From the NCBI GenBank assembly GCA_003427395.1, contig BFEA01000022.1, positions 2,629,608-2,693,607 on the forward strand: DNA of 64,000 bases. The letters run 5' to 3'. Shown one piece after another: positions 3,542 through 37,697 of this stretch; within the stretch, counting starts at the first letter, position 1, and each line of letters opens with the position of its first letter. The translations under genes were made by a program, and so were the position numbers. Origin of the DNA: Chara braunii. Lineage: Eukaryota > Plantae > Charophyceae. The notes below the pieces were generated by a model, which made no database searches, was not told the DNA's origin, and worked only from the letters and a program-made list of their open reading frames with translations.

Positions 3542-3596
3542 AACCTTTTTGCGCGGCTGTTTTCGGTCGTGCGATCGCTGAGATTCGGAGGTCTAT

Positions 3597-4290: not shown

Positions 4291-4295
<5 letters not shown>

Positions 4296-4357
<62 letters not shown>
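4296..4357. repeat. (AG)n microsatellite inside copy A
   Basis: Direct dinucleotide run; the homologous (CT)n run in copy D is at ~37612-37694. Confidence 0.95.
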
Positions 4358-4361
<4 letters not shown>

Positions 4362-5610: not shown

Positions 5611-7904
5611 AGTTTTTACGGCGCCAACGACAATTTTGAGAAGTGTCGTCAAGAGGGGGCGTGTTTTGAGGTGGTGTTGACGTTGTGATGTCCGCATATT
5701 GCGGCGGCGACGCCTCGACACAGTGGTGACATAGTAGTACTGGTCGCAAGTGGTGACAGCGCTGAGGCACTGAGGGGATTGCGTGCCAGTGGGCGATCCT
5801 TGAGGGAGTGGTGTGTATCACTTTTCTGACAATTTACTGCGGCGATCTTCTCGTCTGGAGCGTGATCTTACACGGTTTTGTTGAATGAGCCACGTCCATC
5901 TCAACTTCACTCAAGGTTAGTTGAATGACTCAGATTTCCCTTCACACCTGTGTGAACCCACACTTGCTTGACCCTGTTCTTTGAATGTTCACTGAAAGGG
6001 TAGAGGAAGTTGTGTTTTGTTTGCACGCGTGAATGGAAGTCTGACATGAGTTCGGGGAGTGCATTGTTTTCGTTTGAACCTATTGTTTGATTTGATGTGC
6101 AGGTAAGTAGAAGGATGCTTGAAATGATGATTGTTTTCTATTTTTTGCTTGCATGCATGTTGAAAGGATGGGAAGACAACTGACGACGAGAAACGGAGCG
6201 ATCACACAAAGGGGTAGAAGTGATTCGTCTAGGTTCGCCCTTGACGTCAGGCGATAAGGGTTGACCGTCTGCTATGGTAAGTGCATTACCTTTCCCTAGG
6301 AGGCATCTGAGGCGGGGGTTCGTTGCCTTAGGGGCCGACCCTGTTAGCGTCTCGGAGTGGACCGCTTAGGCGGGGGGATACCATGCTGTCGTGGTGGAGC
6401 CAGCCCGACTTCTGAGATCCGAGGCTCGCTCGGGCGAGGACGAGGGGTATCCGAGACCACCTCCTAGGGGATGGGTGTGTGCTATTCACGGGAGGTGTCA
6501 AGTTCTTGGCGGCTCACGTTAAGAAGGACCGCTATAGTTTACCCTTCTAGTGGCCGTCTTAGGAGCCACAGACGAATGGGGAACTGGTGCCATAAGAAGC
6601 CCAGTTCGTGTGTTCACTAGCTATGGATGGAGTGCGACTAGGCACTATCTTCGCGGATAGGGTTGCACCATAAGAAGTGCAAGCCTAGGACGATCAGACT
6701 AGTTGACGGAAAAAATGTAACTAAAGCATGGCCTTGAATATCTTTATATCGCAGACTGGTATTTCATCATTCGTGAAACAGAAAAAGTAATTATTGCTCA
6801 GGAGGACAAAGCGACCAACATGGATCATTCGCTGAGCTTCATCATTTGAAAATGGATCCTTGACCTCAATGAGGCATTCAACGTTCGGTCGTTGAAGTCG
6901 AGTACTGACTTGTAGAGGTGGTAGCCGAATTACTTGCATATGACATTCACGCCAAAGTTAGCGAAGTAATGAAGTCGTCACTAAAACAATAACACCCTAG
7001 AGTCTGAATTTATCTGCGTTTCTTTTCTAGCAGTCAGTATGGGGCGGAATGAAAGAACTTGGCAACGCATCTCATCAAGTCGAGAAAGTCGTGACAGTCC
7101 AGCCGTCTGGCAGGCAGAGTGCAGATGCCTTAGTCAGGCGTCATTTAAGCGTCGCATTGTGTATAGGTCATGCTTTGATTTTTTGTTGATAAGAGTTGTT
7201 TGAAGCCAAGTCAACATTTGTCGCATGCATGATTGTATTATATATAGGTTGATTTAAGAAGATATGTCAACTTACGTTGACCTGAGTCTTCTTTTGATGT
7301 TTAACTTTTGATTGTCTTTGGAAGAAGGGACTAGGATTGATTGAGGTTTTCTTACGCTTGGAATATCACGTCTTAGTCGACCGACGTTGGTCCGATTCCT
7401 GGGAGATCAGCGCCCCAGGGACAGACGGCGTTCGGGTTCACTTCGGTGTTTAACCATGCGTACCTATGCTACAGCGAGCGAGCAAACGCCCTCGGCCGGC
7501 CTACCTCTGCAATTGCATTATAAAAGTTTTCACATGTGGGTCGGTAGCTCGGCGGGGATACGCCCCTAAGGGTGGTGACAGCCCCTTAGGGAAGGTAAGT
7601 TGTGCCCCACGGAAACCTATCCTGTCGTAGGGGACCGCGGGATGTACAGCTGGCGCACTCGGTCGGAGCGGCGAAGGGTCGGCGCGGGTTACCGTGTCAT
7701 CCCCGAGTTGTCTCTAGAAAGTTAAAAGACTAAGTTTCTCCTGCGTGACGCGGCTGGGAGGGCCCTCGCTCGCGCGGGGGCCGATGCGCTCGACACCGCA
7801 AGCACGAAATGTGGGCACGTAGGTACCTGGCACCCGACCATCAGCATTCCATTGTATTTTAATAACCTCTCCTATGTTTGCCTAAGCCCAAGTGCAAGAG
7901 TGAG

Positions 7905-9666: not shown

Positions 9667-9790
9667 GTCCTCAGGGACATCCGTTAAAATTGGAACCATA
9701 CAGAGAGGACTACGGTAGCATGGCCACTGTGCAAGGATGACACACGTAAAATTTATAACTTGAGAGATGGTCCCCAAAAAAAGGGAAAAA
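9667..9790 (+). pseudogene. U6: Processed U6 snRNA retropseudogene
   Basis: Full-length degenerate U6 (GTCCTCAGGGACATCCGTTAAAATTGGAACCATACAGAGAGG...AGCATGGCCACTGTGCAAGGATGACACACG...GAGATGGTCC) with an A-rich tail. Flanked by a ~16-bp near-perfect duplication GAATGGTGTGGATGAC / GAATGGTGTGGGTGAT, typical of LINE-mediated TPRT. Confidence 0.88.
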
Positions 9791-12202: not shown

Positions 12203-12895
12203 TACATTGCATTCAAATATTTGCTAACTTCACTTTTTTTTTAAATCAGAAAATTCTGAAAAAAAAAGGGTTGTACTGTTGTAAAACGTTGCAATATGAA
12301 CAACATTTATTTGAGGGTCATGTCGAAATTCACAGCTGAATTTGAGAAAAAAAATAAAAACATGAATAAAAATATATTTAGACGTCCATTTTTTTAAGGG
12401 CATTTTGTGTGTTTTCTGATTTCTGTGAGAAATGAGCCCTCACGATGTCGCACTTTTTCCAAGTCAGGCCACATCTGGCGACCGGAAAGCCAATAGGCTG
12501 ATACGCAAGATTTTGCTGAATTTTGCAATAATTAAATAAATTAAATAATGCAAATCCCTTCCTGTTGTGTGCGTCTGGCTTTAAGCAAGACCCTTCAATT
12601 ACGGTCTTCGCCAGTCCCCGGTCTTAGGAATCTTTTATTCTGATTCAGAACAATAAAGATGATGCAAATAATAATTATAAAATTTTTGTGTGCCATGCAT
12701 GTATCAATTCTGCCAATTTACTAATTTTGAGAACTGTGACAAGATCATCAGGAAACATAACTTCAATCAAAGTCAACGCAAATGAAGCAAGACTGACCGA
12801 CTGAAGGCAAAGACGAGTAAATGAGGGAAGGTGAGAACTCGTAATAATCCAAGAAGTACAAATGAAAAAACATGGCCAACACTCGTTTAGAGTCC

Positions 12896-13519
12896 TCACT
12901 CATCCCTCTCAAGTCTAGTCCTCAATCCCTCATTTGACTGTGTGTCTTTGTGCCTTGGATGATGCCCATGTACTTCTTGAGATTGTGGTCTAGAGATGAA
13001 GAGCCACCTAAAGCCCACAAGTTCCGAATATGTCGATCCAAAACCGAAGATACGAAAGTCAACCGTAGCACGTAATTCCTCCCATAGTGTAGGAAGATAT
13101 GGTTTGGAGAAGATCCCTCGTCTGAGATGCTGGGATGAGGGTTCAGTCACTACCTTGTAGTCAATCTCTGCAGGGGAGATATACTTCTTGGTCAAATTAA
13201 TCAGGTCACCCCAACAAGAACCATCTGTGAGAAGGAAAGGATCTGGAGGCCTGGGAAAGTCAACGTAGAGCTTGGGTCCAAAGCTATGGATCAACTTTGT
13301 GACACTCTCATCAAGTGTTAGCTCTCTTTCCTCGAGATATTTGGCTGCTGCGATCCAGACTGAATCAAAGTGCTCACGAGTTTCCTTGCCTTTCTTCACA
13401 TAGATCATCAAGTCATGAATAGTACCTTCTGCAAACTCAATGAGAAAAGATTGACAGATCTTCTTGTCTGAAAACGACTGCACTGACATATCAGTACTGG
13501 AAAGCATCCTTGAGAGCAT
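12896..13519 (-). CDS. 207-aa ORF of unknown function (possibly part of a longer disrupted ORF extending to ~13860)
   Basis: ATG start and normal globular-protein composition in otherwise non-repetitive DNA. No family recognised. Confidence 0.3.
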   Translation of the reverse strand: MLSRMLSSTDMSVQSFSDKKICQSFLIEFAEGTIHDLMIYVKKGKETREHFDSVWIAAAKYLEERELTLDESVTKLIHSFGPKLYVDFPRPPDPFLLTDGSCWGDLINLTKKYISPAEIDYKVVTEPSSQHLRRGIFSKPYLPTLWEELRATVDFRIFGFGSTYSELVGFRWLFISRPQSQEVHGHHPRHKDTQSNEGLRTRLERDE

Positions 13520-16500: not shown

Positions 16501-17556
16501 ATCCTCATAATGTAAGCGCAATTCCCTCGAGCCATATGTATACACGGAGTCCAACCTTTTTTCATTCTTGTATGCCGCTGTTGTACCAAATACCCTTACA
16601 AGGGTATTTGGCGTTGTCGCGCGCATCGGTCCCGCACGGGGACCCTCCCGGCTGCGTCATGCAGGATTTGGCAGGACTTGTCGCGGAGAGCGTTTGCCGC
16701 TCCAGCCGAGTGCGCCAGCCGTACCTCTCTCGAGCCCCTACGACAGGACAGGGTCATGCGAGGCACCACTTACCTCCACCTGCGGGAGCTGTCACCATCC
16801 CTTAGGTGGGCGTATCCCTGCCGAGCTACTGAACCATATGCGAAAGCTTTTCGTATGCAATTGCAGAGGTGGCCCAACCGAGGGTGTTTCTCGTTCGCTG
16901 TAGCATAGGGGGTTACGCGTGGTCGAACGCCCAAAAATCGGACCCGTACGCGAGTCGCCGTACTGGGGGGCTGAAGTCCCAATCGCAACTCGGCGCCGGT
17001 CGATTAGGACGCACTACACACACCACGCATTACACCACAACACTCACACCTACCACTTATGACACATGGAACACACACAAACAAACACCACACACAACGC
17101 CACGATGCAACAAATCCTAGTCCCTTCAGTATCCGACCCATAACTTTGTACAGCGAAGTCAGGTAAGTATCGCGCGCTGGACTTTCGTATAAGTGTCGGG
17201 CCTGCGCATGGCCTCCTCATACCAACCAGCCATGCGGGCATATGCAAACATTCGCGCTGATGGGGTACCTTGTAGTACTCGTAGCCTCGTGGCCCTTGAT
17301 ATTTTCGAGGGTCGCGTTCGACACTCAAGTGTCAGCTGACAGGCGCTTTGAGGGGTAATCTCTCGACGCCAGACAACCATCATGTGCGTTTGAAGACCGC
17401 ACCCTCTTCTGCACCCTGTGTAGAGGGGTTGAGTAGACGGCTTTAGGCTGTCGTGGCGGTCAAACATCAAGGGGTTTGACTTTGACGGCTGCCATGGACT
17501 ATAACGTCCAACCATGAAAAACCCAAAAAAGGAAAACTCCCTCCGACTCTCATTAA

Positions 17557-18563
17557 ACCACCACTCTATGGGATAGGACGAAATTGCGCCTACCGGTAGG
17601 CCGAATTTGCGAAACGGCGTCCGGACTACCGGTACGCGAGCGTACTACTGGGTTACCCTTTTCGTCAGTCCTGTCCGTGGGCCCAGCAATTGCAAGTGTA
17701 TGATTTTTTTTATTTTTATTTTTTTTGAATGGGAAAAAAAAAAAAAAAAAAAAAATTACAAATGTCTTTTCGGATGGATCCCTGTCAGGGGCCGCTGTTG
17801 TTGCGGCGCCGTGTGCACAGAATTGCAGTTACGGTCGGATCCCCTTCGTAGGGCCTGTTGGGATGAATGTGCGAATCTGGACGCTGGGCCTGGTAGAGAT
17901 TCAGGAAAGCATATTTGCACGACGCAGCACGGGCACACAGAAACTACGAAGGGGCTTGCACACAAAAGCGACGAAGCGACGAAGGCCCTTGCTGCAACTC
18001 TTGACATGCACAAAAGACAAAAATCTTGGCGGTGTATCTTTTCGAAATGCAGTGGAAGATTCACCATCGTTTGGCACATTTCCAGAGTACTGCAGCCCTT
18101 GCCGGTGTATCTTCCCGATACCAGGGGAAGATTCACTCTCGTTTTGCACATTTCGAGAGGCCCCAAGCCAATACGGCCACGTTGGCGAAGACGTTTGTTT
18201 CTGCCCTCAACCGTTTTTTTTTTTTTTTGGCCTCACCTTCTATGCATGTGGACGCGGAAACGTGTGGCGGGACTGCAAAAAAATAAAACAAGGCCCATGA
18301 AAATATGAAAATATAAAAGAAAAAAAATAAATTGAATGTCTGTTTTTATTTTTTTGTAGACTTCGAAAGTGTTCTGGAAAGTGGCGGCCGCCACTGTTCC
18401 CGCCTTCGACAGCAGGGAAAATCACCTGACCCCGAAGGTGTCACTAGTTCCGACTTTCCCAGGGAGCTGGGCCTGCTGTTTCGCCCACCGGTCGCCGCCC
18501 TCCCTAAATAATCGCCCGGACTCACAGGAGGGGCTATTTCCTCCTGTCCCGTAGAGTGGTGGT
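17557..18563. mobile_element. Non-autonomous TIR element with TTAA TSD (piggyBac- or Kolobok-type target)
   Basis: ttaa|ACCACCACTCTATGGGATAGGA ... TCCTGTCCCGTAGAGTGGTGGT|ttaa. Confidence 0.85.
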
Positions 18564-20445
18564 TTAAGTTAGTGGCCTCCTAGAGTGAAAGGGGTAAGCA
18601 GGCCCCAAACGATGCGCGCGCGGAGGAGGCCCAAAGTCCTACCCATAGGCTATCCGACGTCCAGGATAGTGAGACCTGTATGCGGACTCCCATAGGTTGA
18701 CTGGGGCTAGTCCTTCGCCCATGTGTCGCTTCGTGATACCAAAAACCCGAGTCTGTTGGTCATATCGCGCCTTTGGTCTCGCCGCCCGACCCATAACTTT
18801 TAGTGCGAGAATCGGAGAGTGGTGCGCGAATGGACTTAGTATAAGGTCGCGTGGACGCGGCACCCACGCATACCAATTCACTATGCAGCTCTACGTGAGT
18901 GTCTGCGATGACGGCGCATTATGCGGTGCCCACACCCAAATGGCCCCTTCTGAACCATGGGGTTATTTTCGATGCTCAGGCGTCGGTTGAGGCGCGCGCT
19001 AAGGGAGGTAACCCTTTAGCGGCGCAGAACCTGCCTGAGGCCTTTCCGTCTTCTGCACCCTGAGGTGTCCCAGAGGGTGCGGGGTAAGACGGACCCTAGG
19101 GCAGGAAAGGATTTGGAGCGGTGGTGAGTTGTCTAGCGCATCACCAGCGACACGCTAACCCTTCCGCTCGAAACTTTATCGTTTCACCAAAATAAACTTC
19201 AACGAGGAAAATAAGCAAAGCTCTTAACATCATCAGACAGAACATCGTCGAGGTTAGCCCTGAGGGGGTTACCCGAACGTACGCTTACTGCATCTGGACA
19301 AGTACAGAACAGTCTCACTCAAACACATGGTTTGCCCATATGAATCCAAGACATGATCACTCAACATAACTCAAATGAGACTCTTCCATACATACTTGCA
19401 ATCACATGACAGAATCAACCAAAGATCCACGCGCTACAAGGGGTCAACTCCAACCAACCTCTCCACTCATACCCCTTGCTTTGGCCATGCAAGCCCCAGC
19501 CTCCATCCAACCATAATTAAGTACTCAGTACCTCTGTTAAATGGCCATTCAATAAAAGTCTGGGTGAAACGTCAACAAAACAATAAAATCACCATGGCCA
19601 AAGTCTTTTTAGGTTGAGTATTGAGGGTGAATTGGGGTTGAGTCGTAGACCGACAGATCGACAACCGACCTGTTATCAGTGATAACAGAAGAATGATCCT
19701 TTTGAAGGAATAGGATGAACAGATCAAGCCTTCAAGCGAAAACATGGAAGCCTGCATCACAGTACAGGCCAAAGAAGAGTACTACTTATGCTTGTGTCAA
19801 GGGGAGAACACTCCCCCTAGTCGTAACCTAGCTCCTCTATTAGTACCAAGCCACTAAGTATCACCTCTAATCAGAATGGGTCTGCTAAGTAGCCCATAGC
19901 TGGCAGCGCTTCCCGCAGGAAAAGTGCCTTTCCATAATTTCTATAAGCTCAAAATGACTAACTCTTTTCAGATTTGTAGAAATTTCGGCAGCGCTTCCCG
20001 TAGGAACAAGAGGCTGCCAAGATTTATACGACGCTGAAAAGACGAAAAGACAAAGCACTTATACTTGGGACTAACTTCTGACACCTGCTTAACGATCCAG
20101 GATCAATGATAGCCAACACAACCTCTAGGTGAGACTGAGGGCTAGTATTGGTCCTAACTCCTAGCAGGGTCAGTCCTACCTTCATCCCAAGTTCTCCCTC
20201 CCATCATCCATCTGATCTACCTATGGCTCCAGCACTTGGCGAGCATCTAAAGCAACTATCCTATCGAAAGGACGTCCTAAGTGAGAACCCACAAGCATGC
20301 ATACACATACATCTCTCACACTTCCACATCAATTCAGCTACGTAGTTCGTTACGTCACTCAATTATTTTCCCCTTTTATGTCCCCCTTTCTTATGGCATA
20401 GGATCAGGCTGACCTGCTTAAATAAACAAGTAAGGGTACTCACAA

Positions 20446-21630
20446 TTGGACTGCCCTAACCTAAGGATATGCCCAACACATGACAAAAACGTATGTCCAG
20501 ACTGCCCCAACCTAGGGGTGCGCCCAACACAACATAACCCATAACATACAGCATATGACCAAACCGCCCTAACCTAAGGGTACGCCTGACTTCTGCTTAA
20601 CTGACGACAAGAAAGCATAAGACTAGACTGCCCCAACCTAGGGGTGTGCCTAGCCAGCCTCATACAAAGTTATATATGGCATAGGGTTAAACTGCCCCAA
20701 CCTAGGGGTATGCTTAGCCTGCCTAGCACATACACGAACGACGAATGGTTGGACCGCCCTAACCTAAGGGTACGTCCAACCCACGGAACATCAACGACAA
20801 AAGCATATCGTTAGGCCGCCCCAACCTAGGGGTACGCCTAGTTAGATTACACAGTTTAAGTTACATAAGGCATGATCTGCCTGAACAAAGTACAACGACG
20901 TATGGCTAAGCCGCCCTAACCTAAGGGTACGCTAGCCTCCGTAACAACAATTTAAGCAACCACAGATACTTGCATAAACTTTATGATTTTCCTTTTCTTC
21001 TTAGGCAGATAGTCAGACCTACCCAACCTAGGGAGACATCCAATTGTACCTTTTGTTTAGAAGGGAAAATAAAAGAAGATTTATACTAACTCTCTGCCCT
21101 CTTTTTGTTATCACGTGCATATGACTGAGCCGCCCTAACCTAAGGGTACGCTCAGCCTGCCCGAGTTACCTTCATTATACTCTTCATTCATTTCCCTTCT
21201 CTTTTTGTTCTACCCGACTTACTGACTGGCTTTCCCAACCTAGGGTGCCCAGTCTGTCAGAAATGTAAGTTCAATAATATATACCAGTTTCTATACTCTG
21301 GTTATCCATTTGGTTCATAGCTTATGGCTGAGCCGCCCTAACCTAAGGGTATGCTCAACCTTATGCCTTTGTCTCCCTCAGAAGAAACACACAGGACTGG
21401 GGTCACGCAACCTAGAATGCCCCAGTTTTGTTTCCAGAACCCACAAAAGAAACATCAGGAAGCCGACCTTCCCAACCTAGGGCGCTCATCCTCCTGTTCA
21501 GAAACCCCAAAAAGAAACAGCAGCTGGTTCGTCCAACCTAGGATAGGTCCAACCCTCAAAATCATACAGTCAGTCCCACAAACATAAAATAAACACAGCA
21601 TTGAACCCACTCAACCTAGAGGGGCCCAGC
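20446..21630 (-). repeat. Array of 16 stem-loop units (consensus CYGCCCY-AACCTA-RGGGTRYG on +) with dissimilar spacers
   Basis: AACCTA loops start at 20458, 20509, 20571, 20635, 20699, 20761, 20823, 20918, 21025, 21137, 21237, 21340, 21409, 21474, 21535 and 21613. Stems show compensatory changes. Confidence 0.9.
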
Positions 21631-24600
21631 CTTTGGTTGACCCGGTCAAGACATGCAAAACACCTTCAGCACACCTTCCCCCAGTTCAACTTTGTCTGCA
21701 TTCACTCAATTGGACATCTGATCTCTCGTATACTTGTTCCTTTAGCCTTCACAAGGATTGTCCTGACATACATAACAAAAGAGAAAAGTAATAGCTTCGC
21801 ATAGTTAAGTTCAGATAGCCCAGGGATAATACATAGGGGAAGGGATCACACAGGTTATCGAAAGTATACCTGAAGTTCCCTGCCTCCTGAACCCCGCCTG
21901 GGTTCCGGCAGAGCTCCTGCAATCGGTGGGGCAACCTCACACAGAGGCCTTGGCACGGACCTAGGGGTTGCAATCCCGCCTGCCGCCTTCCTCTCGGCAG
22001 CAATAGACTAGACTGAGACTGAGAAGGGCAGAAAGAGAAGGGTCAGACTCTCAGATACAAGAAGGGTGCTCTCAGACTCCCGTGAGAGGGCCTTGAAACC
22101 TTCAGTGCCTGAGGGCCCCGCAATGGCAGCCAATAGAATGCAGTAGAACTCCTCAACTTGCAACCAAATGCAGAATACCAACCCTTCTGATGGCCCCCCG
22201 AACAGCAGCTGCAGCCCCTCTGCTGAGTCCGACTCCTCCCTCAAAATCCCCGTACTCAAGACTGCAATTACTTAGTCTAGAACGGCCGTGTTTCGAACAG
22301 ATGCAATCAGACTCGACTTATTCACACTTTTCATGCACGTGAACAGCAGAACAGCAAACTGGCGACATGCGCCCACACTGTACTCAGAGATATCATAACC
22401 AGATAAGAGTTCTCTTGTAACTGGCTATGGCGGCTGTGCTCCCAAACAACTCGCTGCGCACACTCTGGATCACCCTGGATGTCCCACACGCAATACTCAG
22501 TACGCACATACAGTATACACACTCTTCCCCTAAGCTACAGCTATGGCGGCTATGGCCGCCGCTACCCTACTGCTATGGCTACAGCATGTCACTCTCGCCC
22601 ACTTCGTCTTCGGGCCGTCTGCAGACCTCCCCGCACAAGCTGCTGAGGCAGCGCTTCCGCATGGCTTCCGCAGGAATGAATAATGGCTGGACGCAGCCTC
22701 TTGATTTATACTTATGTGCTACGTTGGTCTGCCCTGTGTCCCTTGGCCCCTGGTGCACACAGCCCCAGACGGTACTTGCTGGACAGGACCCGACTGCCTA
22801 ACTGGGACTGTTGACTCAGCGAGGTGGCCTACCACCACTTGACCACTTGCCTCTGTTCAACACAGGCTCACTCCGAAAGGCCACTTCTAGAAACCTCTAA
22901 CTTGGCCTTTCGGTACTGTAGCAGCTACGACCTTGCCCCTTCAGGTAATTAGCGGCTACGACCTTGACTCTTCAAACAACCTACAGCTACGACCTCTGAA
23001 CTGTCTAGACTCCTACCCTACAAGTCTACAGTTCGAATCCCTCCTACCCTGTGACCTACGAAAGTCTACCTACCACTGGCGATCCTACAGGTCGCAGGTT
23101 CAAATCTACGGGTGGACATCAATACTGTACACAGGTAAGATGGGGAACTTGGGATCGAGCCCTCGGATCTGCATTCGCTACTGCGAACTGGTGAATACCG
23201 TTTCACAGAGCACACCCCCCCCGTGCTCTACTCAGCCACAGGCTGTCAACAGCCTGGCGCAGCCGTGATGCACAGCGGCAGTAGCAGCCCGCACACAGCC
23301 CACCGTATGCCCGCAGAATACACCCACAGGGACTAGCAGGCCCCCAGCAGCCGGCCACAGCAAGAGTCCGCAGCGGGAAACAGCGCACAGCCTGTGTGTA
23401 GTGGCAGCTTGTCCCAGCAGCAGCAATAGCTCGTCCGCAAAGGCCTGGCTACTCTCTCAACCTGCCGCGCTCAACAGCTGGCCAGGGTGCAGATACGTGG
23501 TCTAGAATCACGCCATTCAAATTGAAGACGCTCCGTGCTCTACCCAAGACGCAAGAGAACTCAGCAATTTGGCAAAGTGTAGTCAAAACAGTAATCCGCC
23601 TAATATAAGCTCCAACAGCAGGGTCCGACATAGATCTTCAGTAAGCTTACCGCGTCCTTAACAGTTGTGTGCAACAACTGGACACTGTACTAATGCTCAG
23701 GGCCATAACAAGGTTTAGGTCCCCATATCATCCCACAAGTACATCAGCGGTATTTGCTCAATAGCTTATCATGGTGCAGCCAGAACGTAGTGCAGCCGAT
23801 CAAACCCCTTCTTACGACAGCTGACCATTTCCTCAGACTACAATTTCGCTACCTCAGGCCAATCTGTCGCTGTGCAGCCTAGAAAGGCTTGGATCGAGTA
23901 GAGCCCGCTCTGTGCTTTATTCGCGACGTAACAAAACCCTGTACACGCTACATCCGTGCCCAATAATCGAGTATCGCCGCAGTGCCCAGCCTGCTTTTAC
24001 AAATACTTTCGTGTCACTCCCGATAGTGCACAGTTCAAAGCTCAGGCAAGGGTAGTACCACAGTTGCTCAGATCAGCACAGAAATGAGCCCCCACGAAAC
24101 CCGTAAGGCCCAACAGCAACTCAGCAGGACTGCACAGTGGTTGTAGCAAGCATGACTATCACCGGAGACACAACAACCTCTGGCATTTGACTAAAAATAG
24201 GGAGCCCAGGACAGCACAGAAAAACACATCAGTAAGCGGGACTATGCTCAATACATCTGCAGCGCCTTGCGATACAGACATGTGTGGTAATAACCTCAGT
24301 AGTTGCCCGACCATTGAGAAACACGACCCACACCAGCTGAGACACGGTATCCTGCTGTTAGGAACCCAGTCGCCCTCAGTATCAGTTCAACAGAAGGAAG
24401 AAATCTCCAGCAAATTGACACTTCGAGCATTTAGCAGCAAGATCTCTCTGAGAGAAAGGGGCAACAGCCTTAGTTACTTACAGCAACTGTCGTAACGCTT
24501 TAACCTGCGAGCTGCAGCTATCGAGAATGAGACAGATAGGCTAATGACACCTTGAAACAGCTAACTACTAACATTAAACAGGGGCCAATGGGTCTGACAG

Positions 24601-26380
24601 AAGACAGCCTTTGTCGTCTTGGGGTGAGAATCTGCCCTGCCCCCCGTGGTCCCACATGTCACACGACACTCCACCACTACAACATTCAGCCAGGCCGCAA
24701 GTTATCAGAAGTGACTCAAAGCAGCCCTTTCAGCAAAGTCACAGTAGCCCACAACGAGGCACAGCGAAATACAACAAAGGTCTAGTGCAGTACCTCAAGA
24801 GAGTGCACAGCGGCGCGCGTCGCACGGGCACAACCAGATGTACAGTGGGTGCGTAATGACTTCCCTCTCTCTATAACGCCGGCGCTGGTACTAATCTGTT
24901 GTGGAAGTTGGGTTAGTGCAAGTCACCCCTCCCCTAGATCCCAGGAAGAGGTATTGGCACTCCTCTGCTACTGCATCCCCCCCTAATACTCCCCTACCTG
25001 TTCAACTCTCTCATACCTCCTCCTCCTTGCTTGTCACTCCTCCCACTAACACTTGTTACTATTACTATTATTATTTATTATTATTACTTCTACTCTCTCG
25101 ACATAACTGGCCAGTACTGATACGAAATCAGAGCCACTACTCGATATGTCCCTCACTGTTCACGATGCCTGGCTGTAATAGTGGCCAGGTTCAGGGATTT
25201 CAGCCACAACAAACCAACGCGACCTGTAATGGAGCATGACGAGCAATGGGGACGGTTGCTTGGGAACGGAGAAAACCAACCCCCATAAGGAGATGAAGGG
25301 CATGTACTGGGTTCTGGTAATGGACACGAGAACTAATGCCTAGATAGATATCACACCATGGGCAAAAAAACGAAACCTGATTCTTCACAAAAAAAAGAAA
25401 TGGAAAACTTCAATGGCTGGCTCCAAGCTCTCGGCCATGGTGGCGCAGCCCCATCCCCCTTTACCGACCAAACCGCTGTTCAGAGTGCCTTAAAACCCCC
25501 ATATAGCATCTTCCCCCACTCCTTTTCACCAAGAAATGAGAAATTTACAGCGTTTTTCCTCCTTGTCCTTCGTCTGCCCTCTCTCTTCGACACTCCCCGC
25601 GCACCTCCTTTTTTTGTTCCTCCTCTTCCTACCAATCTTCCACCCAGACTAGCTACGGGCTCCGAGTCGCCCACCTCAAAATGCCTTATCCATCACCTCT
25701 CCCTGTTCGATCCCTCGAAGGACTAGCAAGACTACCACTCTTCACTCCTCGTTTTCTCCCTCTCCACTCACCACATTTCCATGGCTCTCTTCTGATGTAC
25801 CTGGCGCAGGTCCGCGCCCAGCTTCATTTATTTCTTGTTCCAACTCCTCCGGGGGTGCGTGAGCTTTGTCCTTCTCCTGCTATTCGCTGCTATCCGCTGA
25901 GTGGCTTCAGCCCCCCTTCGCCATCTTCAATCTTCTTCCCAACACGCCTGGTCGCCCTCCCGTCCAGGTTCATACTCCTTTTGCTGTCATCCCCCTCGTT
26001 TCCCTTCACTCTTTTTTCTTTATTTCTAACTCCTCCTACCTCTTTCCCAACACTGCCACCCTCTCCCTCCTGTGAACATACGCTCTCTTTGCACGTACTT
26101 AGCGTAGTTCAATGGCCAGATTCATCCCCCCCCCCTTACTAACTGTGCCTGGCCCTACTACTCAGCGTGATACTCCGATCCCGAGCCCCGGCTCAGTCAC
26201 TTGCTGCTTGCTCCGCCATAGCCCCGGCCCTCCTGTCTGTACGCACTCGGTGGGGAAACCGCCCAGATTCAGCCCTCCTTCGCCTGTCTGCCTGCCCCCT
26301 CTGTGTAGCGCAGCGTTCAGCGTAGTCCTGGTCGGGAGGCAGCATAGCACCGACAATCATTGTTTGCAGCACCGACTGTC

Positions 26381-26473
26381 GGGCTCTCCCCGAATTTATG
26401 CGGATCGTCCTTGCGCAGGGGCCATGCTAATCTGCCCAGTATCGTTCCAATGTCCACGAATGTCCCGAAGGAC
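26381..26473 (-). ncRNA. U6: Near full-length U6-like sequence with altered ACAGAGA box inside copy C
   Basis: Minus strand GTCCTTCGGGACATTCGTGGACATTGGAACGATACTGGGCAGATTAGCATGGCCCCTGCGCAAGGACGATCCGCATAAATTCG. 5' stem-loop, AGC triad and ISL are intact; ACAGAGA is replaced by ACTGGGC; no U-tail. Confidence 0.85.
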
Positions 26474-29400
26474 TGTACCACAGTAGTGGTAGCCCAGCAG
26501 TAGCCTAGCCGTTCGCGTGTGTATCCCCTGAATGATGCCGCTGGGTTGTTCTGCAGGCCCCAACATTGGTACAGCCTTACAGGACCTTATAGCAAAAACG
26601 CAGAAATAGAAAAAATAAAAACTTAACCCAGAAAATAAAAAAAAACATATAAAAAAAAATAATAAAATAAAGAAAAACGGACGGGGGAGGGGGACTGTTT
26701 GTACCTGGTCCTACCCCACGGGCCCGTTGCTGGACTCCCCCAACAAAACCAAGGGGGATAGTCCCGTGGGACCCTCAACCCCTCGATTAGCTCCCGCAAT
26801 ACGCTCCATTGCTCCACCACACGCTGCTGGCCTCGATCCCAGGATTTGGCCGGTGAGAGTCTGGCACCGTAACCGATAGGGCTAAGCCCCAGCCTGGCAC
26901 AGTTGCAAGCCAGGTTCCCTATGAGGAGTAGTGCCTGTTAGGCCGGCCTGCGGCAGGGTACTATAGGCCATCAGTTTAACTCACTGCTTGCGCCTCAGGC
27001 CCTGCCGCGCCGCACTTGGCTGCCTTGGGGCAAAGCCCCACGCGGGCCTCCACGCAGGCCTGTTCCACCGCGGCCTGGCGGCGTGTTGAGCCTCTCATAG
27101 CCCACCACTAATGCCGTTGCCTAAGAACCCCCCCCCGGCTTGTACTCTAGTTGCGCCTCTCCTACTCGGCCTCAGTGGCGGCTCTGACCATCGGTAGGGC
27201 AAGGTCAGCCTGGCGTCTACGAACTCTGTACAGTGTGATCCCAAGCTGTCGGCTCTCATCAAGTCGGGCGGCGTTCCCCTTTTGTCATAACCCTACAGAA
27301 CCAACACTATGCCGTCCTAAATCTTGTCTGTGCGTGCGAGGTCGCGACCGCCTCAGAGTCTTCTAGCGTGACACTCACTCGTCCTACCGACGCCTCGTGG
27401 TCGTTCTCGACCCAGACTCCGTCGGCCTAACGCGTGCCCATAAAGTGCACGCTCACTCACTCTCTAATCAATACAAGTGGGACGCGCCCTCAGATATCGT
27501 CAGGCGCGTTCTTCCTGCGAGTTACAAGAACGTGCCCAAATACCCTTGTAAGGGTATTCGGGCCGACAGCGTGCTTTTTGCAAGTCACGTCGGTGCGGCC
27601 TCGTTTGAAGTTGACGGCGCGCTCGAGGGTGAGAGTTGAGTCCTCGCTCGGGTGAGTGGCGCGCGTGAGGTCTCGACGGCGAGGGGTAACCATGCGCAAC
27701 CTTGGTGTGCGCGACATCACAGGCCAGCAGGACGCCCGACCCCTCACCCCGTTGCTTTTTTTTTTTTCCTCGCATTTGTTGTTCTTCTTCTTCTTATTAT
27801 TTTTTATTTATTCCTACTTTTATTTTCACAGTTGTCGTTGACCCGGTGACGGGATCCGAGACCGACGTCGGGCACCATGGGCCAGGCTCGGCTACTACTT
27901 TGCCGGACACGGGTGGGAGATCACTTTAGAGTGGCATGAATCTTCCCATGTTTTGGGGAAGATTCATTCTCTTTTTCGGCGAGGAAAGAAATGGGGCCAT
28001 GCTGTTGCTGCTTGTTGTCCCATGCTGCTTCTGCTCGCTGTCGACATCATTACATTTGATGACTAAGTTTTGCTGATAGGGGGGAAAGGCGTGTGTGTAA
28101 GCAGAGAGAGGGCGAGGAGGGGGAATGCAGAGGGGTGTGGGTGAACTGAGAAGGAAAACAGAAGACTTACCTGCATGACTTGTGAGATGTGGTTGGCTCC
28201 TTCGCAGATGTGGCCTCCATGTTGCTCCCCTTCACAGTCTGCATCATTGTTGGGTTTGGGTCCGTACAAATCTGGCCGGTAAGGCGGCCAGATGCATCAG
28301 AAAGGAGAAGGCCGAGTTGACTAAGCGAAAGGAACAGAAGGGGCGAGGGAATACATACCTGACAGACTGAGCACAGTGGTGCAAGAGGGGTCCGACGGGG
28401 GAAATCTTTCTCGTGTCCTGATGGACGATTCATTCTGATTTTGCTCGCCCACCAATGGAGGTAGCCTCTCTCAATCCTCATGATTGGAAGGCAGTGTATA
28501 CCTGACCGCAGTCCAGCGGGATACTCAGTCGCATTTGCTTATTAACAGTCATGTTGTCGGCGGATGATGCTGCTATCTGTGCTCGTCGTCGGGGGCTGTT
28601 GCTGAGAGTAAGTGAACTGTTGTCCCCGTTTCTGTTTGTGATCATTAGTGCTGACCACGATTATTCCCCCCGCTCACGTCTTTTGTCCCTCTCGTGATTA
28701 TACTAACCCGATAGCTTTAAGGCAAGTCGGGCAACAGGGTAAGTCGTCTTGGTAGTAGAAGTGGCAGAGATGAGAGAGTTGGGGGGGACAAAGGAAGACT
28801 TACCTGTACATGGCTTGGCTGAGGCTGCTAATGATGACAGGTTGTGTCACAGCGGAGGCGTGTTGTAACAAGTCTTTCTGCACTTAGGAAGAAGGTTCAC
28901 TCCCTTCTTGAAGCTTATGTGTTGCCAGGTGGAGGTTCTAGAGAGAGAGAGAGGGAGAGAGAGGGAACTCGCCAAGCCATTAATGCAGGGGAACGGAAAG
29001 TTGAGCTATGTGCCAGATTGTGGGCTTGTAGAACATTGCTCCCGTAGCCACGTTCAAGTGTTGCTGCGTTCTGTTAGCTAAGTTGCTGCTAGACGCTCGA
29101 AGTGTTGATGCAATTATCAGTTTCTGATAAGATTGCAGCTGCTCCTGGCCTGAATGTCTGCTGCCGCAAGCCAGGAGGTTGCTACAGGCTTGTTGAGTTG
29201 CTACGAGAGGCGCGGAAACAATTTCTGCAGGCTGTATGGTTCGGCCTTTGACATTCAAAGTCGGACTTGCTGGTTGAGGCAGTAAGCACTACTATTGTGC
29301 ACTGGTATTGATGGTCTTCTAGACCAGGGCTGCCAGTTGCAAGACCGAACCACTGTTGTGGCACAGGGTGTCGGCGCTGCTGCACGGCAGGGCTGTCATC

Positions 29401-30799
29401 CTCGTTGTGTCTGCTGCTGCTGCTGCTGCTGCTGGCCACCATCTGCAAGCTGATCGTATTCGGGTTCTGGGTTGTTGTTGGTCCAGACTCTCGTGGTTTT
29501 CGGCACTGCTGGTGCTGATGTTGAAGATTGGTATTTGATGAGGCCAAGGGGCTCCTGCAGCTAAGGCCTAAGGAACCACTACTACAGTCGTGGGTAGCAG
29601 CTAATAGTTAGTAACACTATTGGTTTTAGCAGCAAAGATTATTTTGGGCCACCATTGCTAAAAGACTAATGAGACTGCTGGAGTTGCTTGCTGCTGCTAT
29701 TTGAATCAGAAGTACTATTGCGTACTATTGCAAATGTTGTGCCTTCTATTGTACCTTTGCTGCCCTCGGCTACTGAGTGTCTGATGTGTAGTTGTTGTGC
29801 TCCTCGTTCTTGTTGTTGCTGTGCACTCATTGTACGATTGTTGTGCATTACTGTGCATGGCACTAGGCCTCAACTGTTCAGAGCTGTGAATTAATGTCTT
29901 CTCTATTGTGCACTACCGCGTACCGTTGCTGAGCACACTATGTTTGCTGAGTGTATTGTTGCACAACACTGTACATTATTATAGTGTCTTGTTGTGTCAC
30001 ACAGCTGTTGTGCGGCCCACATTTGGCAATACATGTACTCCGTCACTGTTATTGTTCCCCTTTCGGGCGCTGTGTTTTGCTGCTCGCCATCACCGACTGC
30101 TATGGACCAGTGTATTTGTGAAACTTGTTACTGGCATTGCTATCTGTTAGATTACTGTGCATAACGGCAGTGTACGCCGCTGTTTGACTTAGTATCATTT
30201 GCACTCCGAATAGAGCACAAGGGTGTGCTCTATTCTAACACAGCTTTTCGAGGCTGTGTAGTGGCAATCCGGTCAGGAAGAACGGCGTTTTGCTTTCGAA
30301 GGAGCGAACAGGCTGCAAGAGGGGATTATTGTTGTGACTTGGGGGTTCGTCAAAGTGCTGCTGTTCTGCGTCTGAAGGAATCAAGGCCCTCTCACGCGAG
30401 TCTGAGCGCACCTCTCTTGTATCTGAGCGACTCAATCTCTCTCCTTCTGCCCTTCTTACTCTCAGTCTAGTCTCTTGGTTTAGAGAGGAAGGCGGCAGGC
30501 GGGATTGAAACCCGTAATCCGTGCTGAGGCCTTTGTGGGAGGTCCGCCCCACCGATTGCAGGAGCTCTGCCGGGGTTCAGGGAGGACCTTGGAGGCAGGG
30601 AACTTTGAAGTAGGTCGACACGATCTCCCGTAGGATCGTGTATACCCCTCTCTATATCTCCTTTCATTCAGTTTGCTTGAGTTTTGACTTTTTGTATATT
30701 TCCTTGACTTAATTCAGGACTTTAACTTAATCAGAGGAAATTTACTATATTTGTCTAAATTTATCTGTCTTAAATGAAATCCACGATGTTTGCTTGCGA

Positions 30800-31135
30800 T
30801 GATTTGAATGGGGCTGGAAATGAGGTCCTTCTGACTGATCCGGTCGCCTTGCTCGTTTTGCCTAAGACATTGAACTGGGGTTGGAGATAAGGTCGTTCTA
30901 ACTGATTCGGTCGCNNNNNNNNNNNNNNNNNNNNNNNNNNNNNNNNNNNNNNNNNNNNNNNNNNNNNNNNNNNNTCGTTTTGCTTAAGACATTGAACTGG
31001 GGATGGAGATGAGGTCCTTCTGACTGATCCGGTCGCCTTGCTCGTTTTGCCTAAGACATTGAACTGGGGCTGAAGATGAGGTCGTTCTAATTGATTCGGT
31101 CGCCTTGCTAAGTCTGTCAGATTGCATGGGGTTGG
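30800..31135. repeat. ~70-bp tandem repeats spanning an assembly gap (inside copy B)
   Basis: Units of GACATTGAACTGGG...GAGGTC...CTGAT.CGGTCGCCTTGCT; copy number is uncertain because of the N-run. Confidence 0.75.
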
Positions 31136-33991
31136 CTGAGAACAACTTTGAAAGATAATCAACCGAGTAAGATACAGGACAAATGTTTCTATGATCAAGA
31201 CAAGCGAAAGATGAACACGTTGGATGAATGAACACTTGTTTTTGAACTGGCTGAATGAGTTGTTGACATGACATGCTTGTTAGCAAAGCCTCGTCTTTTG
31301 TTCAAGTTTTGTCTATTTCAGCTGCTTAATAGGGTAGTTTGTTAGTGCTCGCCACGTGCAGGAGCTATAGGAGTTAGTTCAATTCTTGCATTTTCTGAGT
31401 TAAGTTTTACTTAGTTTAAGTTATCACATTTTTTTGGATCATTTATTTTACTTGGCTTTGGCGGTTGTCTTGCGTCGAGAGATTAATCCCTCAAGTCGTG
31501 TGTCAGCCGACACTGGAGTGTTGAACGTGACCCTCGAGACTATCAAGATTAACCCCTCAAGTCGCGTGTCAGTATGGGTACCACATAGTATGCCATCATT
31601 GCGACTGCTTGCGAATCGTTGCATGGCTAGTCGATATGAGAAATCCTTGCATCCGTGCAGTTTTATATTAAGACGCTCGCGCGATGCTTAACCGGTTTCC
31701 GTATGAGAAGGTTATGGGTTGGATACTAAAGGGACTAGGAGTGTTTTTGTTTTGTGTGATTGATCCGACTTTTGTTTTGGCGTGGTGTAACGTGTGGTAA
31801 GAAGGATGCGTCCTAGTCGACCGACGACGAGTCGCGCTTGGGACTTCAGCCCCCCAATGCGTCGGTTTGCGTACGGGTTCGATAAAGGCGTGGAACCGCG
31901 CGTACCCCCTATGCTACAGTGTACGAGAAAACGCCCTCGGTTGGTCCACCTCTGCGATTGCATGTAAAAGCTTTCGTATTGTGGACTGGTAGCTCGGCGG
32001 GGATACGCCCACCTAAGGGATGGTGACAGCTCCCGCAAGTGGAGGTAAGTTATACCTCGCGTGACCCTATCCTGTTGTAGGGGTTTGCGAGAGGTATGGC
32101 TGGCGCACTAGGCCGGAGCGGCAACGCTTTACGACTAAAGTCCTACCGAATCCTGCATGATGCGGCCGAGAAGGTCCCCTCTCATTGCGGGGACCGTGCG
32201 AGCGACACCGCTATACAATCCACACATCCCCTCTTGATTACCCATACACCAGGGATGGAGGATAATATGAGTAGCTCATTGAAGCTAACGACACAAGCAA
32301 TGTGGGAGAGTTGACGTCAACGGTGAGCCCATGAGTAGTGCTTTTACGCAGAACTCAATTCTTTCTTTTGTGCAAATCGTTCTCGCACATTCCCCCTTGC
32401 TCTTATCCATAACTGTCTCGAGAGCTCAGTGTCCTTGCCGAGGCGAGCTGGTCATAGCACTCATTGGGCGAGATGTCTCAAAAGGCACGGGTCAAGCAGG
32501 AAAACATGGACCATGCGATTGGTACCCGCTATGAACACACACACCTCGTTCATGAGAGAGACTCACATGCTCCTCCGAGCCATACTCGTAAAAAAAAAAA
32601 AAAAAAAAAAACTGATGACTTTGATTGCCCTTCCCATAACTGTCTCGCCACCACACGCACTCAGTCCCTCTGGCGTCGCGAGATGGCTTTCGGACCGTCT
32701 TCCACAGACGCGATTGGCGGGAGGTCCTTCCGCCACTGTTACAGATTGTGCCACGACGTCTCTATGCTGCTAGCTTCAGAGTCAGGCCCTAAGCCCCTGC
32801 CCATGCATTGTTCTTACGGTCTGTAGCCCTCTCGCAGACTCGACGTTCTCTGTTAGTAGCATTGTGTCTGGAGGGGGAGTCTCAACATCATTTGCATCTC
32901 TCTTGCGCGGGTTGCATGTCGCATACACGAGAGGTCCCTTTCTCTCTCTCTCTCTCACTCTCTCTTCTCTGAATGCCCCCTCTCCCTGTCTTGCCCGCTT
33001 CTCTCTCAGAGACCCCGTCGAGGCGAGTTGACCTTTGGGCCCTCCTCTACCTGCTCTGTCGGATGGTGGTCCCTTCGCCATTGCTCTCGCCCGTGCCAGG
33101 ATCGGGTTTCAATGTCGCTCTCTTCACTTTCCGCTTCAGAGTCTCGGTTCAGATTTATTTGTTCCCGCTCTGTAGTACCAGTTGAAGACTTTGTCTCATG
33201 ATAGGCAATCGTAACTTCAATGCACGCAGTAACGTGGTCATGTCGACGTCTCCTTTCCACTCTGTTTTTTTGCTTCGGTGATAGCTGCCTGCAACTTTTG
33301 GTCCTCCCTTATCTCAGCATCTCTACCTCCTTCGACATTAATCTTCAGTCTCGCATCATCTCCATCAAAATTCAGGATCGTTGTGATCCAAGGGCCCTCC
33401 CCAGATGCTAATGACGAACGGGTTAGTAACCTCCAACAGTTAGGCTTGTAACCCTCTAGCCCTCTTCGGCATGCCATTGTCGCACACTTTGAAATAGCCT
33501 CAGCTTGGCAGTAGCCTGCACACTCACACTGTACGTTCGGAGCACTGGACAGTGAAGTCCTGATAGTGTTGGTCGGAGTGTGTCGCCGCCTAACACGGCT
33601 ATTTTAACTTACAGCGAGAGTGTACCCGACCATACGGAATTAGCGGTGCACCAGCACATGCTTCACACGCGCTACCACAGGACTGAAAGTCCCCGATGAC
33701 TACGCAGTTAGCTATTACCTTTGTAGAGCCCAAAAGGCCACGATCCCAGTGTACTACATGAGATACTTTAAAAACGTTTTTGAATTAATATCTAACGTGG
33801 GGCTGCATAAGAATAATATTCTAACCAATAATAACTAAGAAAAGGAAGGCAGTCACGACTCAACGGTCACAGTGCCCGCAGTCTTCGAATTATCTTGGGG
33901 GCTCGGCGCGCAGTGGTCCCATAACTGGACACCGATCGGTTTCTCCCTCCCTTTTTAGGGGGCTATCAGACTAATCCTAATGGGTACCCGT

Positions 33992-36900
33992 TGTCGAGCG
34001 CATCGGCCCCCGCGCGAGCGAGGGCCCTTCCGACCCCGTCACTCAGGAAAAACTTAGGCTTTCAACTTTTTAAAGACAACTCGGGGACGACACGGTAACT
34101 CGCGTCGACCCTTTGCCGCTCCGGCTGAGTGCGCCAGCTGTACATCCCGCGGTCCCCTACGACAGGATAGGTTCTCACGGGGCACAATTTACCTCCCCTA
34201 AGGGGTTGTCACCACCCTCAGGGGCGTATCCCCACCGAGCTACCAACCCACATGCGAAGGCTTTTCTGATGCAATTGCAGAGGTAGGCCGACTGAGGGCG
34301 TTTGCTCGTTCGCTGTGGCATAGGTACGCATGGTTGAACGCCAAAGTGGACCCGAATGTCGTCCACCCCTGGGGCGCTGATCTCCCAGGAATTGGAACGT
34401 ACGCCGATCGAGTAGGACGTGATATTCCAAGCGTAAGGAAAACTTCGAGCGATCCTAGTCTTTCAAAGACAATCAAGAGTTACTCAGACAAAACAGTTTC
34501 AAATGAAGAAGACTAAGGTCAACGTAAGTTGACTTATCTTCTTAAATCGATTTATCCATAATAGGATCATGCATACCACTCGTTCAGATTAAATGTACGA
34601 AGGCTGACTTGACTTGTCATCCAACGACGAGCCAACATGAGTTGACTTGACTTCAAATAACACTTATCAACAAAAGGATAAAAACATGATTAACATCCAT
34701 AACGACGCTCAAATGGCGTCTGACCAAAATATCTCCACTCTGCCTGCCAAATGGCCGAGTTGATGAGATGCGTTGCCAAGTTCTTTCATTCCGCCCCATA
34801 CTGACTGCTAGAAAAGAAACGCAGACATCCTCCAACTCTCAAGTAGAGCTAGTATATCATTGCTTTAATGGTGACTTCACTATCTTTCTAACTTTGGTGT
34901 GAATGACTTCCGCAAGTAATCCAGCGACGACTATTCAAATTAGCGGCCGATTTAGACAACCGACGCATTGGTTACCCTGCCGAGGACGGGGTTCTGGTTC
35001 TAAATTTTATTAGTCGCTTTGTCCTCCTAGGTAACAATGGCTCTTTCCATCCCACGAATGATGAAGTATCCATCTTCATCATAAGATTGTTCAAAGCATC
35101 GCTCTAGTCGCTACTTCCTATCAACCCATCTCAACTTCCCCAGGTTTGCACTTCTTGTGGAGCGAACCTATCCGCGAAGGTAGTGCCTACTCGCACTCCA
35201 TCCAAGACTAGTAATTACACGAACTGGGCTTCTTCTGGCGCCAGTTCCCCATACGTCAGTGGCTCCTAAAATGGCCACTAGAGGGGTATGCTATGGCAGT
35301 TCCCCTTAACGCGAGGTGTCAAGAAAACTCAAGCCCCTTCCATGAATCGGCGCATGTCCTTTCCCTAGGAAGTGGTATGGGATACCCCTCGTCGTCGCCC
35401 GAGCGAACCTCGGATCTCAGAAGTCGGGCGGGCTCCACCACAACAACATGGTATCCCCCCGCATAAGCGATCCACTTCGAGTCGATAGCGGGGCCGGCCC
35501 CTAAGGCAACGAACCCCCGCCTCAGATGTCTCCTAGGGAAGGGAAAAACGTCTACCACGGTGGGCAAAACGATCCCTCGACGCCTAACGTCAAGGGTAAA
35601 TTAGACAAAAAAAGAGATCACAGAAGAGAAAATCATTCAGACAGACGGGCATAGACAGGGAGGGTCATTCGAGGAAAAACGGGTAACCTCAGAAAAAAAA
35701 TCTATGTCCGATTGATTTCTTCTTCTTTGTGTGATCAAATTCCTTTTCGTCATCTACTGGTTGTCCTTCCCTTGAACATGCATGTAAGTGAGAAATAGAA
35801 AACAACCATCCTTCTATTCATTTCCATTAACATGGATAGGTTCCTCTTTTCCAGGCATCCTTCTACCTATCTGCACATCAGGACAAACAACGAGTTCAAA
35901 AAAAGACAATACAATCCCAAACTCATGTCAGACTTCCATTCACACATGCAAACAAAACACAACTTCATCTACCTCTTCAGTGAACATTCAAAGAACAGGG
36001 TCAAGCACGTGTGGGTTGCGAAGGGTTATGAGTCAAACTGACTGACCTTGAGTGAAGTTGATGTACGACTCACTCAAGAAAATCGTATGAAATCTCGTTT
36101 CAAATGAAAAGATCCCCTATAAAGCGATCCACACCACACCCTGGTGGTCGTTCATCACAAGAAGCCGTTAGCAAAGTGATCCACACCACTCTCTACAACG
36201 ATTGCATGCCGCAATACTCTCTCAACACACAATCACCTCCCAATAATCTGACGACGTCTTAGCATCACCGTTACACCAACCGCGCCACCACGCAGTTGCC
36301 GTCAATACCAGAACACCCTGCCACAGAATGTCCCTCACAGCCAAGACAACCCGGCCAGTCTCACGCACCACTGCCGTTAATGCTGCCATCAACCACCACT
36401 AGCGTCACTGCGACACCATCACCAGCGTCAACATGTTGCCCCCGCGCTATACGGACAACATAACACCAGCACTAACTTAAAAAAACATGCCACCACTTTG
36501 ACGACACTTCCCCTGTGTCAATGCCTCATCACCGCAAAAAACGGGCAGCGCTTTCGTGCCACCATCCAAAATGCACTACTGCCACCGTGCAAAACGGGCA
36601 ATGCTTCCGCGCCACCACCTAGAACACACTGCCGCCTGCCGTAAAAAATGGGAAGCACTTCCACTTTGCACCTCACCACAATCGGCTGCCGTCGCCGCAA
36701 AAAATGGGCAACACTTCCTCGCCACCGCCAAAACGTGCCGCCGTTGCCGTGCCGAGCGGACAGCACCCCTCCTGCGTTTCACCAAGTGCAGCGGCAGCTA
36801 TGACTACCCTCACTCCCGCGGTCTCTGCAGACCTCCAACGCTTCTCTCTCCCCTCGCTGAGATGGCGGCTATGGCTGTGTTTCACAGCTATAGCCACCTC

Positions 36901-37608: not shown

Positions 37609-37697
<89 letters not shown>

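Follow-up and report, generated by a model that had tools for sequence, protein, structure and literature searches.

The largest LTRs in a broad survey of plant LTR retrotransposons measure about 5 kb, and a preference for NCGN target sites was there unique to Phygy, a moss non-chromovirus Ty3/gypsy group with mostly tRNA-Trp primer binding sites (PBS) and whole elements of 7.7–10 kb (PMC6317226). Athila has a tRNA-Asp PBS and a 5-bp target site duplication (TSD), and TatII a TSD of 5 or 4 bp with no NCGN bias (PMC6317226). Tandem arrays are common in plant non-chromovirus retrotransposons, and their origin and function have been described as unknown (PMC11963269). The LTR family from Chara braunii described here resembles Phygy in its 4-bp NCGN TSD, but has an Asp/Asn-type PBS, and one of its LTRs, E1, is alone (9–11 kb) larger than a whole Phygy element. 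With Athila and TatII (OTA clade) the family shares a TGGCGCCGTTGCC PBS, long LTRs and tandem repeats in non-coding regions, but its TSD is a 4-bp NCGN sequence in five of five copies, whereas that of Athila is 5 bp. Judged on TSD, PBS and size, the family fits neither Phygy nor Athila.

E1 carries an array of 16 hairpins that also has partial parallels. No covarying loop-display array is reported for Athila or TatII in the literature examined (PMC6317226, 10.64898/2026.03.20.713144). The palindrome region of Sirevirus LTRs is similar in its repeated hairpin motifs, in conserving structure more than sequence and in being family-specific (PMC4728375); Sireviruses, however, are Ty1/copia elements with few loci in a cis-regulatory region, whereas E1 has 16 units with an invariant loop, 3′ of the predicted transcription start. 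Ty1 and plant pararetroviruses have packaging signals in the 5′ leader (PMC6844567, PMC5902531). Ty1, retroviral and pararetroviral signals are comparable to the array as parts of a structured 5′ leader with exposed purine-rich loops for Gag or coat protein (PMC6844567, PMC5902531), but consist of one to a few unique structures rather than a 16-fold tandem array within an LTR. Cassandra, Helenus and Ajax, like E1, contain sequence derived from small RNA genes within the LTR (PMC10886601). These are tiny TRIMs with internal 5S or tRNA Pol III promoters, whereas E1 has a U6-like piece in a giant LTR. The bacterial CsrB and RsmZ are free small RNAs with many short hairpins and GGA loops. They share with the E1 array the display of one loop motif on many hairpins; the E1 array is eukaryotic, lies in cis and has no Rfam match.

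A family of probable solo LTRs

The window analysed is a stretch of 64,000 nucleotides of C. braunii DNA (contig BFEA01000022.1, positions 2,629,608 to 2,693,607). Five non-coding elements related to one another (A, B, E1, E2 and E3) emerged when the window was compared with itself. One end of some 430 nt is common to all of them (76% column identity), and they share a small hairpin at the opposite end. All five have TG..CA-type ends and a short TSD, although the 3′ end of E3 is decayed. The TSD is 4 bp with a central CG (NCGN) in every copy; NCGN makes up 4.5% of 4-mers. A sixth NCGN flank was found at another C. braunii locus, L012.

The shared-end pattern led to a further locus (L004, contig BFBZ01010409.1), 87% identical to A, in which GG and then TGGCGCCGTTGCCGGGGA come directly after the terminal CGACA; TGGCGCCGTTGCCGGGGA matches the tRNA-Asp/Asn PBS of Athila (10.64898/2026.03.20.713144). 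This junction comes from an A-type LTR end rather than from E1 itself. Because a PBS follows the homologous end, the shared end is the U5 end, which makes all five elements solo LTRs, and for E1 the minus strand is the sense strand. The G/T-rich strand is the sense strand in every LTR copy. The conserved U5 (window 16768–16830, minus strand, and the homologous U5 ends) carries GGCGGGGAUAC and GGUGACAG, which should be able to pair with the plant tRNA-Asp anticodon arm, so that an extended primer contact is possible. A search with the 44-aa frame of L004 using HMMER returned a single spurious tandem-repeat protein (P0121, from L005, eukaryote), which was excluded from further analysis. A Ginger1 or GingerRoot DNA transposon, which would have long terminal inverted repeats and, for GingerRoot, a 6-bp TSD, was considered and dropped once the PBS was found; the elements here have ends inverted over only about 5 bp and a 4-bp TSD.

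E1 (16615–27568, minus strand) is 10,954 bp long, starts with TGTCGG, ends with CGACA, and is flanked by GCGT on the left (16611–16614) and on the right (27569–27572). A hairpin about 8 nt inside its 5′ end (27536–27561, minus strand) is common to all five family copies, as is the conserved U5 end (16615–17045, minus strand; 76% column identity). From its ends, its TSD and the PBS at the homologous end, E1 is very probably a solo LTR. Recombination between the LTRs of a giant Chara retrotransposon of non-chromovirus Ty3/gypsy type would have left it behind. E1 includes a small nested MITE-like insertion (17983–18160), also seen in A and at L002, L011 and L013, and about 1.9 kb that is missing from its relative L012; its core is therefore about 9 kb. 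A block at 19386–19700 (minus strand) is shared with that relative, another E1-type LTR (L012 1–319, 78%), and one at 21873–22105 (minus strand) with E2 (82.6%). The latter contains a pyrimidine tract and CAG near 22022, which resembles a 3′ splice site and may serve as one, and a donor-like AG/GUAAGU lies in the U5 end (16775–16768). On the antisense strand, positions 21900–21990 (plus strand) of the E1/E2 block look loosely tRNA-like by eye, with an acceptor-like stem and a T-loop-like arm; neither ARAGORN nor Rfam reported a tRNA there. The open reading frames of E1 gave no significant Pfam match and no exact database match, and a single U5 frame was searched without finding a homolog, so that E1 is non-coding as far as tested. 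Rfam found only U6 in E1. The preliminary description of an 11-kb non-coding mobile element is correct, though it leaves out that E1 is the solo LTR of an LTR retrotransposon.

E2 (16579–32207, plus strand; TSD CCGC) is a solo LTR of 4.67 kb without E1, which is inserted in its 5′ end, 32 bp inside that end. A (2862–7795, plus strand; 4.9 kb; TSD CCGC) carries a U6 3′ half and an array of 53-bp GGAA-loop hairpins, and B (33992–39324, minus strand; 5.3 kb; TSD CCGT) is its sister; both are solo LTRs. E3 (45424–46325, minus strand; 0.9 kb; TSD ACGC/ATGC) is internally deleted, has E1-type ends and is inserted in a chromovirus integrase region. Decayed chromovirus-type Gypsy elements (pieces of gag, protease, RT and integrase with stops and frameshifts), together with a LINE zf-RVT fragment, occupy 39860–47400, 52700–59300 and 62976–64000; B adjoins such elements and E3 sits within one. 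All best matches of the Gypsy RT in the window were C. braunii proteins.

No gag-pol, polypurine tract or two-LTR element of the family was found in the window or in 256 kb of other loci, a small sample, and the LTR–PBS junction was not found in IMG/VR. Among eleven C. braunii loci retrieved via chromovirus RT genes, four LTR fragments turned up; none of these loci supplied the array, a PBS or a non-chromovirus RT. E1-type pieces are present at three other C. braunii loci, L007 (70%), L008 (79%) and L012 (75–78%). Just past the truncated E1-type fragment of L007, a unit of about 390 bp occurs three times in tandem (22880–21873, 91% identical).

Other features were noted in passing. A type III hammerhead ribozyme (48.5 bits) lies in A (4193–4247, minus strand), with near-identical copies at L002 (25786–25841 and 42788–43465), L006 (16402–16457), L007 (20908–21133) and L012 (7242–7319), often adjoining (CA)n/(AG)n tracts. 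Since it is absent from B and E1 and present elsewhere, the copy in A is a separate insertion, likely of an abundant Penelope-like or retrozyme-like retroelement. An AT-rich element contains a 207-aa open reading frame (12896–13519, minus strand) with no Pfam match and no exact database match, and its part at 12460–12660 resembles L007 12080–12290 by eye. Microsatellites, namely long (GAA/GAC)n and (GTTC)n runs, and short tracts of telomere-like CCCTAAA were seen at 50437–51429, 61090–61308 and 62430–62610, and at L013 23090–23250.

Anatomy and covariation of the hairpin array

The array (20438–21638, minus strand) is real. As first described, it contains 16 AACCTA hexamers (UAGGUU on the minus strand) between 20458 and 21618, spaced 51–112 nt apart, with 7 of the 15 gaps measuring 61–65 nt. 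On the plus strand the loops start at 20458, 20509, 20571, 20635, 20699, 20761, 20823, 20918, 21025, 21137, 21237, 21340, 21409, 21474, 21535 and 21613. Dinucleotide shuffles of the region contained 1.0 such hexamers on average and never more than 8. The minus-strand units align without gaps around the invariant UAGGUU, and each consists of a lower stem of 5–8 bp, a 3 × 2 internal loop, an upper stem of 3–4 bp and the loop. Identity to the consensus is 70% in the lower stems and 40% in the 5′ flanks, and the hairpins are only 58% identical to one another. A covariance model of the array recovered exactly 16 units and none elsewhere in 376 kb, with no degenerate extra units above noise. An H/ACA snoRNA cluster was considered and rejected. 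In H/ACA snoRNAs the pseudouridylation pocket lies 14–16 nt before the H or ACA box; the array units have a 3 × 2 internal loop, an AUA motif about 10 nt from the upper stem, and no Rfam match.

The stems covary. Paired cells amounted to 79.5%, against 69.1 ± 1.8 in shuffles, two-sided changes to 26 cells against 12 ± 3, and the covariation score to 0.46 against 0.30; none of 500 shuffles reached the observed value in any of the three measures. Ten of 11 stem pairs covary. Sliding the register reduced pairing to 24–56%, and swapping arms with a free register gave 106 ± 5 against 138 observed. As relatedness of the units and strand-biased mutation could mimic covariation, neutral decay of ten core units was simulated on star and duplication trees, with 3–5-fold strand-biased transition rates included. 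The 48 Watson–Crick pairs and 12 two-sided Watson–Crick changes of these units exceeded every neutral null tried (P ≤ 0.004), while total pairing alone was not significant under a strongly sense-strand-biased transition null (P = 0.15). The covariation of the stems noted at the outset therefore withstands the arm-swap, slide and strand-bias controls.

The preliminary description also read the wobble pairs as pointing to the minus strand. G·U pairs do outnumber A·C there (15:4 in a fixed register, 13–17:0–1 in a free one), but composition alone would give about 2:1. In partition-function folding, the sense strand did no better than the antisense strand in the upper stems (means 0.53 and 0.62), because the units cross-pair. 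The covariation and simulations support the proposal that what the minus strand conserves is a structure and not a sequence, and the array has probably been conserved as an RNA-level structure.

The spacers had been described as largely unrelated. This was mistaken: they are decayed copies of tandem units, with shared remnants in two groups. An ACGAC..GCATATG remnant is common to spacers 1, 3, 5, 6 and 7, and a CAGAAACCC..AAAAGAAAC remnant to spacers 12–14 (pair z up to 6.8). A CAUAUGC-like motif lies 3′ of most hairpins. Because of these shared remnants the array is a diverged tandem duplication, and the spacers align in part as a decayed minisatellite. It grew as a unit of about 62 nt was duplicated in tandem. 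About 320 kb of Chara DNA contained no further match to the spacers.

The array was seen in one copy. A second was not found among 256 kb of further C. braunii sequence, where the E1-type fragments of L007 and L008 end short of the array position and that of L012 begins about 750 nt past it. Searches for the pattern in JGI metagenome contigs, in IMG/VR and in GTDB genomes were likewise negative. A cluster of loop-complementary receptors on the sense strand was not found. The sister LTRs carry different repeats. E2 has a tandem array of a 67-bp unit (30804–31109, plus strand, crossing an N gap) at the position matching the E1 array, and A (5265–5633, plus strand) and B (about 36500–36750, minus strand) have arrays of 53-bp hairpins with GGAA or GAAA loops. 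The A and B leader hairpins are much more stable when folded on the sense strand, and they show no covariation. No stem-closed UAGGUU was found in A, B, E2 or E3, so that the UAGGUU array is not essential family-wide.

Position of the array within the LTR

A TATAAAT box and a CATTCATT-type initiator lie at 22675–22710 (minus strand) in E1. The spacing, TATA–24 nt–CATTCATT, and motifs downstream are alike in A and B. Since the TATA/initiator layout is common to E1, L007, A and B, we place the predicted start, and with it the U3/R border, near 22680. The 31-bp repeats 5′ of the TATA box (22919–22995, minus strand), shared with L007, look enhancer-like. If E1 is transcribed from this start, on the minus strand, the array would fall within the R/U5 leader, at +1.06 to +2.22 kb. 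A candidate poly(A) signal, comprising a UG-rich tract and AAUAAG with predicted cleavage near 22300, was located at 22295–22330 (minus strand), and the similarity of two other copies, L007 and L008, to E1 is lost near 22300, just past a UG-rich tract and an AAUAAG-type hexamer. Position 22300 may, on these two copies, be the R/U5 border; the array would then lie in U5, and the genomic RNA would carry it at its 5′ end alone.

The U6 snRNA-like sequence of E1 (26374–26473, minus strand; Rfam match, 60.6 bits) had been linked with the array by strand. It does lie on the same strand, but in U3, 3.8 kb upstream of the predicted start and thus outside the leader that would hold the array. Its ACAGAGA box is changed to ACUGGGC, the U tail is missing, and no upstream plant snRNA promoter element (USE) was seen by eye. 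A functional U6 gene was rejected on these grounds, and the sequence looks like a captured, diverged copy. Plant U6 has, to our knowledge, no internal promoter. Pairing of the altered box with the donor- and acceptor-like sites of E1 did not rise above background (−18.4 against −18.0 kcal/mol for the next best) and was discarded. Of the five copies, three (E1, A and B) have U6 pieces in their U3. Those of A (3597–3650, plus strand) and of B, where the piece is duplicated (38211–38262 and 38468–38520, minus strand), are 3′ halves with U tails. Further full-length U6 pseudogenes were noted in the window (9667–9771, plus strand) and at L013 (24496–24606), and U6 copies seem frequent in the C. braunii genome.

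Possible roles of the array

Sixteen variable stems that each present one unpaired, invariant hexamer have the look of a multivalent binding surface. Our preferred reading, held tentatively and at somewhat less than an even chance, is that the array acts in cis as a multivalent RNA platform for a protein, probably the element's own Gag, in packaging. With transcription as predicted, the array would stand in the leader of the genomic RNA, and selection would have preserved the hairpin fold together with its UAGGUU loop, whereas the stems and spacers would have drifted. The array would present its exposed, G-rich loops to an RNA-binding protein, and Gag or its nucleocapsid, by binding them, would mark full-length RNA for particle assembly. 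Different G-loop arrays in the sister leaders are what coevolution of each array with its own Gag would produce. Because E1 is a solo LTR, a packaging signal or cis scaffold is the most natural interpretation, and a free CsrB-like sponge is less likely. Zinc-knuckle proteins bind loop guanines, and nucleocapsid domains prefer exposed guanines. Gag is favoured by this preference, by the variation of the loop among subfamilies, which fits a partner evolving with the element, and by the 5′ leader position of the Ty1 and plant pararetroviral packaging signals. If the array is a protein platform, the chance that Gag is the partner seems slightly better than even. Against the platform stand the single copy of the array, the failure to find gag-pol, a polypurine tract or a two-LTR element in the DNA searched, the PBS junction coming from an A-type LTR, the upper-stem folding, the lack of covariation in the A and B hairpins, the absence of the UAGGUU array from the sister LTRs, and a U5 of about 5.7 kb, which would require a very long strong-stop cDNA.

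The same loop could instead be read by a UAG-binding protein of the host (hnRNP A/B-like, Musashi-like or U2AF35). That protein would regulate the 6-kb leader at the level of splicing, 3′-end choice, export or stability, or would be sponged by it. UAGGU is an hnRNP A1 site, also within hairpin loops (PMC3683929), and a crystallised U2AF1 ligand (PMC7505975), and the LTR has donor-like and acceptor-like sites as well as U6 pieces. A host target would, however, be expected across subfamilies, whereas A, B, E2 and E3 are without stem-closed UAGGUU, and in the Mag example the hairpin reduces hnRNP A1 binding (PMC3683929); we regard a host partner as rather unlikely. The array might also be a neutral decayed minisatellite of the kind found in the non-coding regions of Athila, Tat and Ogre, in which template switching or arm conversion at the DNA level keeps the pairing. 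The mutual relatedness of the spacers, the single copy seen, the non-significant total pairing under the strongly strand-biased null and the frequency of family-specific tandem arrays in non-chromovirus elements (PMC6317226, PMC11963269) are all in keeping with this. Arm correction nevertheless predicts perfect palindromes, and what is observed instead is a retained 3 × 2 internal loop, a non-palindromic invariant loop and G·U pairs on one strand; the two-sided Watson–Crick changes, moreover, beat all simulated nulls. We therefore consider neutrality improbable.

We think it quite improbable that the array works like the Sirevirus palindrome region, as DNA (an enhancer or factor-binding repeats) or as a source or decoy of small RNAs. 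Sirevirus LTR palindrome arrays do conserve structure and not sequence, and are siRNA hotspots (PMC4728375), but the E1 array lies 1.1–2.2 kb downstream of the predicted TATA box, with separate 31-bp repeats upstream, and a DNA-binding site leaves the G·U asymmetry and the covariation unexplained. Stems of at most 11 bp with an internal loop appear too short for Dicer-type processing and would make poor substrates. The repeat–spacer look had suggested a precursor of guides, as in CRISPR, and TGT..ACA ends with a 4-bp TSD would also suit Ginger1, that is, a non-autonomous Ginger-like DNA transposon making a free sponge RNA. The precursor is unsupported, since the spacers are interrelated and without outside matches in the Chara DNA searched, the hairpins are only 58% identical where a CRISPR-like array would have identical repeats and unique, foreign spacers, and the stems appear too short for Dicer-type processing. 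A Ginger-like element is opposed by the absence of long terminal inverted repeats and by the PBS after the homologous end. Both are highly improbable.

Gag packaging, the reading we prefer, can be set in a wider proposal to which we give a modest chance. The family would be a novel charophyte Ty3/gypsy lineage with NCGN target sites, a tRNA-Asp primer and LTRs of up to 9–11 kb, in which the array of loop-display hairpins inside the LTR is an RNA-recognition signal, subfamily loop codes (UAGGUU, GGAA and others) fit Gag or recruit splicing factors, and the U6 sequence in U3 is put to use.

Long LTRs are known already, as are tandem arrays and palindromic LTR regions. A limited search of the open-access literature found no report of a 9–11 kb LTR, of this Chara family, or of covarying stems combined with an invariant loop in an LTR array. 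The E1 LTR is about twice the upper size of about 5 kb in the broad plant survey (PMC6317226). The invariant loop and compensated stems of its array point to selection on RNA structure. With its mixture of Phygy-type target site and Athila-type primer, the family is relevant to how non-chromoviruses evolved early on among the algal relatives of land plants.
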